Origin: Paramoeba atlantica
Lineage: Eukaryota > Protista > Discosea
NCBI GenBank assembly: GCA_977017575.1
Contig: CDRNVI010000178.1
Span: forward strand, 1-64,000
Length of the DNA: 64,000 nt
Direction: 5' to 3'
Below the pieces are notes generated by a model. The model was given only the letters and a program-made list of their open reading frames with translations, was not told the origin of the DNA and did not search any database. The position numbers and the translations under genes are program-made. Shown piece after piece: positions 45,894-50,530 of this stretch (position 1 is its first letter; every line of letters begins with the position of its first letter).

Positions 45894-46970
45894 TTATTCC
45901 CTTTTTGCTCCTTTTAAATTCACCCCCATTCTCCCATTACGAAAAATATCAACTTTTTCTGCTCCCATTCCACCATCTCCAGGAAGAGGGAATGCACAAA
46001 ACTCATGATCCTTCAATGCTTGAATCATTAAATCCCAACGTTCAATGTATGGTTGTACAATATCAGAACGAGTTCTTTCAGAGATTATGGCGAATTCATT
46101 GAAAAATTTGGTCCCTCCTCTCTCAACAAGACCATCTCGATATGATTTAAATACACAAAATCTTGCAATTGGACTTCCTCCTTCACAAAGCACCTCGATC
46201 AATTTCTCTTTCCGTTTTTGATAGATTTGTTCTGAGAGAGGGATATCAACAATGGTGTGGACATTCTCTGTATTCAATGGGAGAGATGGAGGTGGAGTAG
46301 AAGAGGGAAAGAGAGGTTTATCACAACGAATACAACGTGTTGAGTGTTTGGTATCAGCTCGCTGAAGAAGTTTTTGTTGCTTTTCAGCACAATTGCATTG
46401 AGTATGATAGTGACGGCAACAAAAGATGTGATATAGAAATCCCACTACTTCTTCTTCAGCCACAGGATTGGCAAGGTTGCAATCTTTGTGTACTTGGACT
46501 TTGTGTTCTGGGTTGGGGTGGATACAAGTCTTGATCTTCAGTTCTGAAGTCAATGCAGTAATGCAATAGGTTCCCCCCATCTTCAATCGAGAGAATAAAG
46601 ATGGATAAGAGAGAAAGACTTCTTGATCGAAGACCACAACATGAGCAAGTCGAGTCAAAGAATATAAGACCTCTTCGTTTTCGAATGGAAGAACATGTAA
46701 GTGAGTAATGTCATTGATCTCCTCTTCAGAAAAAACTCTTTTCTCTTTTGCGAGACTCTCGAATGATGGGATGCCATGTCCAGGAGACGAACGAAGATGG
46801 ACAATTCGTTCTGTTGATTGAACACACCCCAGATAAGGAATCAAAAAAGAGAGCCAATGTTCGACTGTTCCTTTATCATCTGGACCTGTCGCACAAATCC
46901 AGGAACGAGGTTGGTCCCGAATCCACCACTCCCGGCGGCGAAACGAATTGGCTTGAGAGTCACTCGCCAT
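45894..46970 (-). CDS. Uncharacterised intronless 358-aa protein, copy A (Cys/His-rich centre)
   Basis: Long ORF retained intact in both duplicates; no family recognised. Confidence 0.75.
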   Translation of the reverse strand: MASDSQANSFRRREWWIRDQPRSWICATGPDDKGTVEHWLSFLIPYLGCVQSTERIVHLRSSPGHGIPSFESLAKEKRVFSEEEINDITHLHVLPFENEEVLYSLTRLAHVVVFDQEVFLSYPSLFSRLKMGGTYCITALTSELKIKTCIHPNPEHKVQVHKDCNLANPVAEEEVVGFLYHIFCCRHYHTQCNCAEKQQKLLQRADTKHSTRCIRCDKPLFPSSTPPPSLPLNTENVHTIVDIPLSEQIYQKRKEKLIEVLCEGGSPIARFCVFKSYRDGLVERGGTKFFNEFAIISERTRSDIVQPYIERWDLMIQALKDHEFCAFPLPGDGGMGAEKVDIFRNGRMGVNLKGAKRE

Positions 46971-47167
46971 GTTCTCTTGCTTCGATTTGGTTTCCCCAAC
47001 TAAAATCTCAGCAAAGGGAATGAAAGAAATGTGTTGAACAAAAGAGAATTCTCAAAAAAAGATAAAGGTGGTTATTTTGGTGGTGGTGTTTTTGGCAACA
47101 ATTTTTGAAACCACAAAAATTTTCCGTTTTTTTTGTTTTTCCTTCACATCAAGTCACTTTGTGGACA

Positions 47168-47203
47168 ATGGCAAGTGTTATCACAGATGATCATCTTCTT
47201 TTG
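47168..47203 (+). pseudogene. Orphaned copy of CDC16 exon 1 (MASVITDDHLLL)
   Basis: Near-identical to 50531-50566 but cut off before the splice donor. Confidence 0.7.
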
Positions 47204-47291
47204 TACCTTCAAGGATTCTTTCAATTTTGAACTTTCATCATGGTGAAAGAAAAATCAAAATTTAACAATTTTTATTCTTCCAATAGATAGA

Positions 47292-48371
47292 TTATTCCCT
47301 TTTTGCTCCTTTTAAATTCACCCCCACTCTTCCATTACGAAAAATATCAACTTTTTCTGCTCCCATTCCACCACACCCAGGAAGAGGGAATGCACAAAAC
47401 TCATGATCCTTCAATGCTTGAATCATTAAATCCCAACGTTCAATGTATGGTTGTACAATATCAGAACGAGTATATTCAGAGATTATGGCGAATTCACTGA
47501 AAAATTTGGTCCCTCCTCTCTCAACAAGACCATCTCGATATGATTTAAATACACAAAATCTTGCATTTGGGTGTTCTCCTTCACAAAGCACCTCGATCAA
47601 TTTCTCTTTCCGTTTTTGATAGATTTGTTCTGAGAGAGGGATATCAACAATGGTGTGGACATTCTCTGTATTCAATGGGAGAGATGGAGGTGGAGTAGAA
47701 GAGGGAAAGAGAGGTTTGTCACAACGAATACAACGTGTTGAGTGTTTGGTATCAGCTCGCTGAAGAAGTTTTTGTTGCCTTTCAGCACAATTGCATTGAG
47801 TATGATAATGACGGCAACGAAAGATTTGAAAGATTGGATATTTCTCTACTTCTTCTTCAGCCACAGGATTGGCAAGGTTGCAATCTTTGTGTACTTGGAC
47901 TTTGTGTTCTGGGTTGGGGTGGATACAAGTCTTGATCTTCAGTTCTGAAGTCAATGCAGTAATGCAATAGGTTCCCCCCATCTTCAATCGAGAGAATAAA
48001 GATGGATAAGAGAGAAAGACTTCTTGGTCAAAGACCACAACATGAGCAAGTCGAGTCAAAGAATATAAGACCTCTTCGTTTTCGAATGGAGGAACATGTA
48101 AGTGAGTAATGTCGTTGATCTCCTCTTCAAAAAAAACTCTTTTCTCTTTTGCGAGACTCTCGAATGATAGGATGCCATGTCCAGGAGACGAACGAAGATG
48201 AACAATTCGTTCTGTTGATTGAACACACCCCAGATAAGGAATCAAAAAAGAGAGCCAATGTTCGACTGTTCCTTTGTCATCTGGACCTGTCGCACAAATC
48301 CAGGAACGAGGTTGGTCCCGAATCCACCACTCCCGGCGGCGAAACGAATTGGTTTGAGAGTCACTCGCCAT
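47292..48371 (-). CDS. Uncharacterised intronless protein, copy B (359 aa from the ATG at 48371)
   Basis: Paralogue of 45894..46970; the upstream ORF extension runs into the transposon TIR and is not real. Confidence 0.75.
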   Translation of the reverse strand: MASDSQTNSFRRREWWIRDQPRSWICATGPDDKGTVEHWLSFLIPYLGCVQSTERIVHLRSSPGHGILSFESLAKEKRVFFEEEINDITHLHVPPFENEEVLYSLTRLAHVVVFDQEVFLSYPSLFSRLKMGGTYCITALTSELKIKTCIHPNPEHKVQVHKDCNLANPVAEEEVEKYPIFQIFRCRHYHTQCNCAERQQKLLQRADTKHSTRCIRCDKPLFPSSTPPPSLPLNTENVHTIVDIPLSEQIYQKRKEKLIEVLCEGEHPNARFCVFKSYRDGLVERGGTKFFSEFAIISEYTRSDIVQPYIERWDLMIQALKDHEFCAFPLPGCGGMGAEKVDIFRNGRVGVNLKGAKRE

Positions 48372-48528
48372 GTTCTCTTGCTTTGATTTGGTTTCCCCAA
48401 CTAAAATCTCAGCAAAGGGAAGAATGAAATAAACTCTTGTGTTGAACAAAAGAGAATCAAAAAAAGATAGAGGTGGTGGCTTTTTTCTTTTGGTGGTGGT
48501 GTTTTTGGCAACAATTTTTGAAACCACA

Positions 48529-48578
48529 GGGCTAAAGTCAGAAATTGTCGCGCTAAATTCAGAAATTGTCATTTTCGT
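48529..48578 (+). repeat. Left terminal inverted repeat (contains two 21-bp subrepeats)
   Basis: GGGCTAAAGTCAGAAATTGTC GCGCTAAATTCAGAAATTGTC ATTTTCGT. Confidence 0.92.
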
Positions 48579-50317
48579 TTATTTAATTTCGTGCATTTCT
48601 TACACTTCCTCTCATGTTTTGTCATCTTCCCTTTGTTGGAGGGGACCTTATAGCATGCAGGACACATCCAAAACACATCACAGAACTCACAGCCCCACCA
48701 ATCACGTCCAATTCGACATGTTTTTTGACATCCAGCCTTACACTCTCGTGTTTTTTGCTCTCTCTCCTTCTCTCTGAGGGTTCTCTCTCTCTCAACAATT
48801 TTCTTTTCTCTTTCTCTCTTTTTCTCAATTCTTTTTTGCTCTTGCTCTTCTCTTTTCTTTTGTCTCTCTTGGGCCTTTTTCTCTTTCGCAAGTTTCTTTT
48901 CTTTTTCCTTGGTTTTCTTCTCCTCTTCTATCCTTTTGTTCTCCACCATCATATCTGCAGGGTCATACCCACGATTTTTTCTCACAGTGTGGGTTACCCT
49001 CTGAATTTTTTTCCCCTCCTCACTTGCCTTCTCAACTGTCTTTTCAATAATCAAGGTAACTTGTTGTGTCATTTTCTCAACTAAATAGTCATGCTCTGAA
49101 GTGGGTGTAAATCCAGCATCATCCCCACCAGGGCAGTGGTTCTCCTTGGCCAAGTGAAGGATTTTCGTTTCAGAAAAAGGGAACAAACCAGTCTCCTTAA
49201 ATGCCTTGGTAATAGTCTTGGCTGTGAAGGCTTTCTCAGTACTTTGGAGAACAAAATCAATAAAAGAAAACACGTTGGTTCGCGAAAACGATTGGATATA
49301 CGCGTGCTCACTTGTGATCCTTGTCACTTGCTGTTTTAGACTTGCGAATAAGAGGTTATCAAGTGGCTGTGACCAGTGTGAGGTGTGGGCAACTAGAAAA
49401 CACAAAGAGACATGGTTTTCAAAAGCCTTTTGGACCACTTGGATCTGACGATGTGAGCCAAGGTTGTCTCCAAAGCATATACATTCCACTCCAGGGTGCA
49501 AAATATTCCATCTTGACACAAAATCCTCCATAATTTGTTGGAAAACAACATCATTGATGTATCCTGACTCAGTAAAGAAGACAAGAGAGGGAAGTTGGGC
49601 AGATCGAGTTCATTTTGAGGTGTTTGGAAGATCAAGGTGAACAGTTGCGGTGTCCCCTTCCTTGAATTTGGCAGCAAACACAAAGTATGTCGCAAGGGTC
49701 ATTCCATCAGCCCCCACAAAGGGTAGAAAGGTTCCACAGTGTGTCCCCTTGATACCTGATCAATTTTGAGACTTCTTGGCTTTCTTGCTCACCAACCACT
49801 TGATCCGCAATTTACCCTCCTGAGTTAGCAGAATCCAGCACTCATCATAGTTGACAAATGCAAACGAAAGAGGTGTTCACGTCGCAAAAAACTTCTTCAT
49901 CTTTTCCACAAAATATACAGTTTCATCATAAAGATGAGCAGAAGCTCAATCATTCGAGAGAGGGGTGGTATTTCCAAGGCCCAAGTCATCTGAATGCTTT
50001 GTCAAAAAACGCTGGATTGTTGAGCGCGAGATTTTCTTCAAAAACATATCTTCCGCCACTTTATGCATTTGATCCACTGTCCATGGTTTCTGAATATTTA
50101 CCAAAGCAATTGCAATGTAGAGGAGGGACTTCTGTTCTTCCTCTGTCAGGCAGGAATTGCCATGAACTTCACCAGGCTGTTTTCTTCAATAATAGGCCAG
50201 ACTGACCGCATTTTTGCTCTTCCCAATTTCTCTACCATGGATCTCACATGCCTCACCAACTGAGTGACCCTTTTCAACTAGATTTTGGATGTCCACAACA
50301 ACATTGGTGTATGCCAT
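48569..50317 (-). pseudogene. DDE_1/pogo-type transposase pseudogene (CENP-B-like HTH, DDD core, coiled coil, Cys-rich C-terminal finger)
   Basis: ATG at 50317; LTEEEQ..SRSTIQRFLTKH; VNYDE, GDNLGSH, HTSHWSQPLD; in-frame TGA at 50188, 49948, 49762, 49612; one frameshift near 49870. Confidence 0.9.
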
Positions 50318-50356
50318 AACCCAAAACAAAACAAGTTGTTGACCGTTTCAACAAAC

Positions 50357-50406
50357 ACGAAAATGACAATTTGTGATTTTAGGGCGACAATTTCTGACTT
50401 TAGCCC
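50357..50406 (-). repeat. Right terminal inverted repeat
   Basis: ACGAAAATGACAATTTGTGATTTTAGGGCGACAATTTCTGACTTTAGCCC. Confidence 0.92.
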
Positions 50407-50530
50407 ACAAAAGTTTTCCGTTTTTTTGGTGTTTTTTGGTGTCTGGTTTTTTGTATTTGTTTTTTGTATTTGTTTTGGTGTTTTGTTTTTTGTATTTGTT
50501 TTTCCTTCACATTTAATCACTTTGTGGACA

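Follow-up and report, generated by a model that had tools for sequence, protein, structure and literature searches.

The only target-site duplications that Gao et al. 2020 (PMC7386202) give for the pogo superfamily are TA, TAA (most Fot elements) and TAAA (some Fot-like elements). Fot and Fot-like elements, of which the latter are reported in protists, are DD35D transposons of about 1.9 kb with one open reading frame (ORF) of 535–580 aa and terminal inverted repeats (TIRs) of 40–60 bp (PMC7386202). The survey of Dupeyron et al. 2020, in which protist elements are few, likewise lists only TA, TAA and TAAA duplications and no variant such as the one described here. Tc4 elements duplicate TNA within CTNAG (PMC11071193), and the Tc4-clade rows of the alignment published there show a DD37D triad with NADQSG and LADSW motifs. 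Here we characterize a transposon in a 64,000-nucleotide stretch of DNA from Paramoeba atlantica (GenBank assembly GCA_977017575.1, contig CDRNVI010000178.1, positions 1 to 64,000 of the forward strand; the whole stretch is called the window below). Its structure, insertion flanks, transposase and decay are jointly best explained as those of a dead cut-and-paste transposon of the pogo superfamily (IS630-Tc1-mariner) with a 3-bp, TA-independent target duplication, a reading that we regard as very probable.

The element is a DNA transposon of 1,878 bp that spans window positions 48529–50406 and has GGG...CCC termini. Its ends and its target are as follows.

48526..48528, unstranded: left copy of the target-site duplication, ACA (from junction reading, the repeat-length test and the empty-site alignment)
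48529..48578, plus strand: left TIR, which starts with GGG and overlaps the last transposase codons and the stop codon
48529-48549 and 48550-48570: the two 21-bp direct subrepeats of the left TIR
50357..50406, minus strand: right TIR, which ends with CCC
50407..50409, unstranded: right copy of the target-site duplication, ACA (from junction reading and the repeat-length test)
47113..47115, unstranded: empty paralogous target, in which ACA occurs once; it lies in the adjacent unit of a tandem gene duplication of 1.4 kb

With a slash marking each junction, the left side reads gaaaccACA/GGGCTAAAG and the right side CTTTAGCCC/ACAaaagttttccg. The inverted repeat extends over 50 nt per arm with 94% complementarity, and each arm is composed of adjacent 21-bp direct subrepeats, GGGCTAAAGTCAGAAATTGTC and then GCGCTAAATTCAGAAATTGTC; the window contains the subrepeat pattern three times, with 0.01 occurrences expected. 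The insertion lies between two units of the tandem gene duplication, and the neighbouring unit retains the uninterrupted site: positions 47072–47115 match 48485–48528 at 98% in a self-comparison of the window, and after in silico deletion of the element together with one ACA, the two flanks form a gap-free alignment over the junction with 47040–47215. The GGG termini, the TIRs built of two 21-bp subrepeats and the empty paralogous site had all been proposed in a preliminary description of the window; junction reading together with the inverted-repeat and pattern searches bears out the ends, and the flank match and gap-free alignment bear out the empty site. The host gene beside the element (window 45897–48360) is itself a tandem duplicate with 1.4-kb units that are about 97% identical and encodes a Cys-rich protein of about 360–426 aa; the transposon is located some 165 bp upstream of the likely start of one unit. 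To the right of the insertion, window positions 50410–50500 form a T/G-rich, microsatellite-like stretch with about 70 bp of repeated GTTTTTTGTATTT units, which the empty paralogous site lacks.

The assembly (45.7 Mb, 248 contigs) contains exactly three copies of the element, one in the window and one each on contigs C155 and C163. The C155 copy reads GCA/GGG...CCC/GCA and the C163 copy TCT/GGG...CCC/TCT, and a metagenome relative (L050) reads AAT/GGGTTAATG...CCC/AAT. When repeat lengths of 1–7 bp were tested, only a length of three left the flanks identical in each of the four insertions that could be read (ACA, GCA, TCT and AAT); at the base composition of the window, four perfect 3-bp matches would arise by chance with a probability of about 1.2e-7. 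These data also bear on the possibility that the flanking trinucleotides are coincidental or the ends mis-set, the real duplication being TA. Two copies have a C immediately before the left repeat, and as the element also ends in C, a 4-bp repeat with asymmetric ends can be drawn there; however, the third copy and L050 exclude 4 bp and only 3 bp fits all four, no junction contains TA, the joined flanks reproduce the empty site, and a chance origin of the four matches has a probability of about 1e-7. A TA duplication with mis-set ends is therefore unsupported by the test and extremely improbable.

The target duplication is 3 bp long and is not ACA-specific, because the other two assembly copies carry GCA and TCT and L050 carries AAT. 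Of the 3-bp ACA duplication in the preliminary description, the length thus stands and is borne out by the length test and the empty site, whereas ACA as the target does not; tabulated over all copies, the duplications are 3 bp throughout and none is TA. The TA duplication expected of the pogo superfamily was not found at any of the four insertions, no TA or TNA requirement is detectable among their duplications, and TNA inside CTNAG is absent from the three assembly copies and L050. It occurs only in a distant relative (L083), which reads C/TTA/GGGG...CCCC/TCA/G, a 3-bp duplication with one mismatch that sits in the exact CTNAG context described for Tc4 (PMC11071193). Target choice looks relaxed rather than re-specified. 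The earlier statement that the known 3-bp exceptions do not match holds for TNA of Tc4/Tc5 and ANT of TBE, but other 3-bp cases have been reported in the superfamily. Miniature inverted-repeat derivatives were not found in the whole assembly: TIR-pattern searches with up to three mismatches returned the three copies only, and weaker matches were as numerous as those of a reversed-pattern control, three that were inspected being unrelated. Relics on contigs C164 and C171 have protein or DNA similarity to the element and no definable TIRs. In the C163 copy, an insertion of ~45 bp separates the halves of the outer subrepeat of one TIR (L046, 4069–4115); it starts with GGTAAG, ends with TTGTTAG and has AGAA on both sides, and its ends resemble spliceosomal intron boundaries.

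Elsewhere in this assembly, ordinary TA duplications do occur. They flank the members of a canonical pogo family with CAGT termini (family A), and a DD34D element on a CpG-poor contig (L037) reads TA/GCCAAAT...ATTTGGC/TA, a normal TA duplication. The latter is the better control, because its contig belongs to the same composition class as those of the three copies. Contigs C149–C178, the home of all three, have CpG observed/expected ratios of 0.24–0.65 and a GC content of 0.32–0.41, against ratios near 1.0 and a GC content of 0.40–0.53 in the low-numbered contigs plus C157 and C220 (L006, L046–L048, L080, L037, L044 and the window compared with L016–L030 and L069–L082). The assembly is compositionally bimodal and may be a mixture of two organisms. 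A tree of 42 proteins splits the family from nine of the ten other DDE_1 proteins of the assembly with a branch support of 99%. The tenth (L043) was placed inside the family on a very long branch; given that branch, its lack of the zinc finger and its different third motif, we treated its placement as long-branch attraction and not as membership. Two multi-copy DDE_1 families (L017–L039; contigs C10, C14, C23, C11, C28, C37 and others) end in ...GGGGGGTAACGGTA on one side and have no inverted repeat at their homology boundaries, a structure unlike that of ordinary pogo elements.

A single transposase gene lies between the short TIRs, with the following features.

48569..50317, minus strand: transposase pseudogene of 582 codons plus a TGA stop, no frameshift
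50186-50188, 49946-49948, 49877-49879, 49760-49762 and 49610-49612, minus strand: in-frame TGA codons of the pseudogene
49838..49852, minus strand: first catalytic motif NYDEC with D158 (N, D and E nearly invariant in 69 family members)
49457..49471, minus strand: second catalytic motif GDNLG with D284 (alignment of 69 family members)
49355..49369, minus strand: third catalytic motif QPLDN with D320 (alignment of 69 family members)

Exactly 35 residues separate D284 of GDN from D320 of QPLD (DD35D), and the same spacing was counted by eye in L083 and in an intact relative (P0006). The largest piece of the frame matches Pfam DDE_1 at 33.3 bits (cut-off, 22), and across 69 diverse family members DDE_1 is detected in 64 and the D158/D284/D320 triad is nearly invariant. 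At E ≤ 0.01, HTH_Tnp_Tc5 is detected by Pfam in one of the 69 and HTH_psq in none. An AlphaFold model of P0006 (pLDDT, predicted local distance difference test, 86.6) comprises two N-terminal three-helix bundles, an RNase-H-like core, a ~70-residue helix and, at the C terminus, a small domain; the solved folds that it matches best are chains of the Mos1 mariner transpososome, SETMAR and Sleeping Beauty. The Pfam score and the residue count thus confirm the DDE_1-like transposase with 35 residues between GDN and QPLD that had been noted beforehand, and the domain, triad, spacing and Mos1-like fold support its assignment to a pogo-type DD35D element.

The C-terminal part of the protein is encoded by two further segments.

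48743..48934, minus strand: Lys/Glu-rich stretch, corresponding to the one ~70-residue helix of the P0006 model
48593..48742, minus strand: putative ZZ-type zinc finger, whose four pairs of ligands are C-x3-C, C-x2-C, C-x2-C and H-x3-C

Six C-terminal Cys/His positions are nearly invariant in the 69 members, and all four ligand pairs are conserved. A profile search matched the ZZ domain of BIG at E = 0.0027 (0.04 with a single sequence), and ZZ_ADA2 matches one of the 69 members at E = 2.9e-4. Nearly all of the top 20 fold matches to a separate model of the finger (pLDDT 74) are ZZ domains, the best at E = 0.37 and none significant alone. On the basis of these sequence and model comparisons, we assign the domain to the ZZ type with moderate confidence.

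All five internal stops of the transposase frame are TGA, with no TAA or TAG in 582 codons, and many open frames in the window grow longer when TGA is read as sense; if the host or the source of the element used such a variant code, the window copy would be intact and possibly active. However, in the closest copy, that on C163, each of the five positions is CGA, and relatives carry Arg at both of the two positions compared by eye. Among lineage-specific substitutions, 5 of 11 and 11 of 32 are transitions at CpG, a strong excess given that CpG makes up about 4% of sites, and the CpG observed/expected ratio of the element is 0.42. Furthermore, the genuine coding sequence of host genes in the window is free of in-frame TGA, the frame length gained by reading through TGA is low-complexity non-coding sequence, the transposase ORF itself terminates in TGA, and the copies on C155 and C163 also carry frameshifts and deletions. 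We therefore rejected a variant genetic code, which is very improbable in view of the TGA-free host genes, the CGA codons of the C163 copy and the excess of CpG transitions. Comparison of the copies indicates that the five TGAs are former CGA codons decayed by C-to-T transition at CpG, and this five-for-five pattern marks heavy CpG mutation of transposons in the host. All three copies are dead, because the window copy has these decay stops and the other two have frameshifts and deletions. The dN/dS ratio (non-synonymous to synonymous substitution rates) between two subfamilies is 0.29–0.33, which indicates that they diverged under selection on the gene and that the family was active in the lineage before it decayed.

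Relatives of the element are numerous in environmental sequences. A word-index search yielded 14, and a profile of eight members extended this to 397 clusters at E ≤ 1e-30, or 2,401 at a cut-off of 1e-10; among the 150 best profile matches, most align end to end (540–630 aa). Each of the ten clusters looked up proved to be a metagenome protein with neither a name nor a database accession, on a contig of 1.8–4.1 kb, and the ENA proteins P0001–P0005 are 71–92% identical. Relatives are encoded at nine metagenome loci and on one contig filed under an archaeal metagenome-assembled genome (MAG); viral contigs yielded no relative. Bipartite TIRs of 40–50 bp recur in all full-length relatives, and the termini are GGG in L050, L053 and L051/L052 and GGGG in L083, which is 24% identical and has the same architecture, including the zinc finger. 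L051 and L052 hold the same element with an identical 1-kb left flank, different right flanks (AGT... and TGT...) and a left TIR that lacks the outer 16 bp, reflecting either a truncated copy that was later duplicated or an assembly join. L083 is a complete eukaryote-type pogo-like transposon on a 2.5-kb contig filed under a Thaumarchaeota MAG, and the identical protein is listed under a Patescibacteria MAG as well; a word-index search with it returned only the protein itself. Its presence in prokaryotic MAGs is most likely binning contamination by protist DNA.

Some observations weigh against a family as uniform, and a target rule as well defined, as the account above would have it. L049 starts with GAG and L055 with GGT instead of GGG, and L056 (29% identical) has CAGGG-type ends and no readable duplication. 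The readable insertions, four complete and one imperfect, are too few for a target logo. The assembly contains no intact copy, and transposition is deduced from sequence.

Judged against the published literature, it is plausible that the element belongs to a large undescribed pogo-superfamily lineage of microbial eukaryotes. The preliminary description had suggested an undescribed family, and this is plausible given that ten relatives are unnamed and that the family is missing from two large pogo surveys. The family might already be catalogued in Repbase or Dfam, perhaps among the protist 'Mariner' or Fot-like entries and with a 3-bp duplication, and the window would then hold only one more dead copy. 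In favour of such an entry, Gao et al. 2020 (PMC7386202) describe protist Fot-like elements, TAA duplications, DD35D transposases and 40–60-bp TIRs, with the same size and layout; however, that study and Dupeyron et al. 2020 give TA, TAA and TAAA only, the ten relatives are metagenome proteins that have neither names nor database accessions, and literature searches found no paper describing the family. We consider prior cataloguing possible but doubtful.

The reading of the element as a pogo-superfamily transposon with a relaxed 3-bp target suggests the following course of events. The intact element would have been ~1.9 kb long, with one intronless gene for a transposase of about 580 residues comprising two N-terminal helix-turn-helix modules, a DDD RNase-H-like core, a helix of ~70 residues and a C-terminal ZZ-type finger. 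Each end, terminating in GGG, would offer two adjacent 21-bp putative binding sites. By analogy with Mos1 mariner, a transposase dimer would pair the ends, excise the element and join its 3'-OH ends to target phosphates. From a duplication of 3 bp it follows that the two phosphates under attack lie three base pairs from each other; the joining positions would thus be offset by 3 bp instead of 2, and gap repair would duplicate the three bases. That the insertions have no target sequence in common suggests that the transposase lacks the base-specific contacts to TA made by mariner-type enzymes. A further dimer contact may come from the long helix, and the finger may tether the enzyme to a histone tail or bind the element ends. 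Domains of the ZZ fold are known to recognize the tail of histone H3 and the N-termini of proteins. The window copy probably inserted upstream of one unit of the tandem host gene after that duplication had arisen, and its subsequent decay, C to T at CpG, converted five CGA codons to TGA. A broader proposal, that a widespread undescribed pogo lineage of microbial eukaryotes has abandoned the TA rule, cuts with a 3-bp stagger at nearly any sequence and is steered to chromatin by its ZZ finger, is tentative.

A TA target counts among the defining traits of Tc1/mariner/pogo elements, and tools such as Sleeping Beauty or Mos1 are restricted by it in their landing sites. A natural branch with the same fold and an apparently relaxed 3-bp target would show that stagger and target reading can change within one architecture. 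Intact environmental members are candidates for less constrained insertion tools, and the ZZ finger on its long helix is a candidate for chromatin-guided integration. Typing by duplication length alone would misclassify the family, for example as Zator or PIF.

The family was compared with Fot, Tc4/Tc5, Mover and Zator through their published descriptions, motifs and Pfam domains, and it fits none of the last three. With Tc4/Tc5 it has in common that the transposase is pogo-like and of the DDD type, that the duplication is 3 bp long and that the C terminus is Cys-rich, and the element could be a divergent TcMar-Tc4 (Tc4/Tc5) member with a loosened target rule: its G-rich termini also fit, L083 lies in an exact C/TNA/G target, the nearest clusters in feature space include proteins with DDE_1 plus Transp_Tc5_C, and one member has a faint Transp_Tc5_C match (E = 0.18). 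However, Transp_Tc5_C, a domain of Tc4, is found in none of the 69 members at E ≤ 0.01 and on none of the three copies. The family has DD35D with N-x-DE and DN-x3-H, in contrast to DD37D, NADQSG and LADSW in the published Tc4-clade rows; its TIRs are 40–50 bp long, whereas those of tardigrade Tc4 elements are 134–160 bp or form whole-element palindromes; and ACA, GCA, TCT and AAT do not conform to the strict TNA of Tc4. Membership of Tc4/Tc5 is therefore unlikely.

Zator/ISAzo13 elements (PMC10045372) likewise belong to the IS630-Tc1-mariner group and make 3-bp duplications, but their transposase is of another family, and the ISAzo13-type domain was absent from all Pfam scans here at E ≤ 1, DDE_1 being found instead. 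Mos1 (PDB 3HOS, 4U7B and 5HOO) is the best structural match to the whole protein and the model for paired-end cut-and-paste; it differs in its DD34D triad, strict TA target, 2-bp stagger and lack of the C-terminal helix and zinc finger, and identity is 11–13%. The published rows for Mover show DD36D, a TA duplication and CAC/CAG termini, none of which occurs in the window element. In piggyBac, a C-terminal cysteine-rich finger binding two zinc ions helps the transposase to bind its own ends, and the target is TTAA. Both transposases would carry a C-terminal finger, whereas the catalytic family of piggyBac is unrelated and its finger is of another type. Fot and Fot-like elements share several general features with the window element, namely DDE_1, DD35D, a length of ~1.9 kb (here 1,878 bp), a single ORF and TIRs in the 40–60-bp range (here 50 bp), and most Fot elements also have a 3-letter duplication, TAA (PMC7386202). 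Nevertheless, the duplications found here lie outside TA, TAA and TAAA and follow no T/A rule, the termini are GGG in contrast to the CGTCC-type motif of one FotA row, HTH_psq, like HTH_Tnp_Tc5, is hardly detectable by Pfam, and the transposase has an added long helix and a probable ZZ-type finger.

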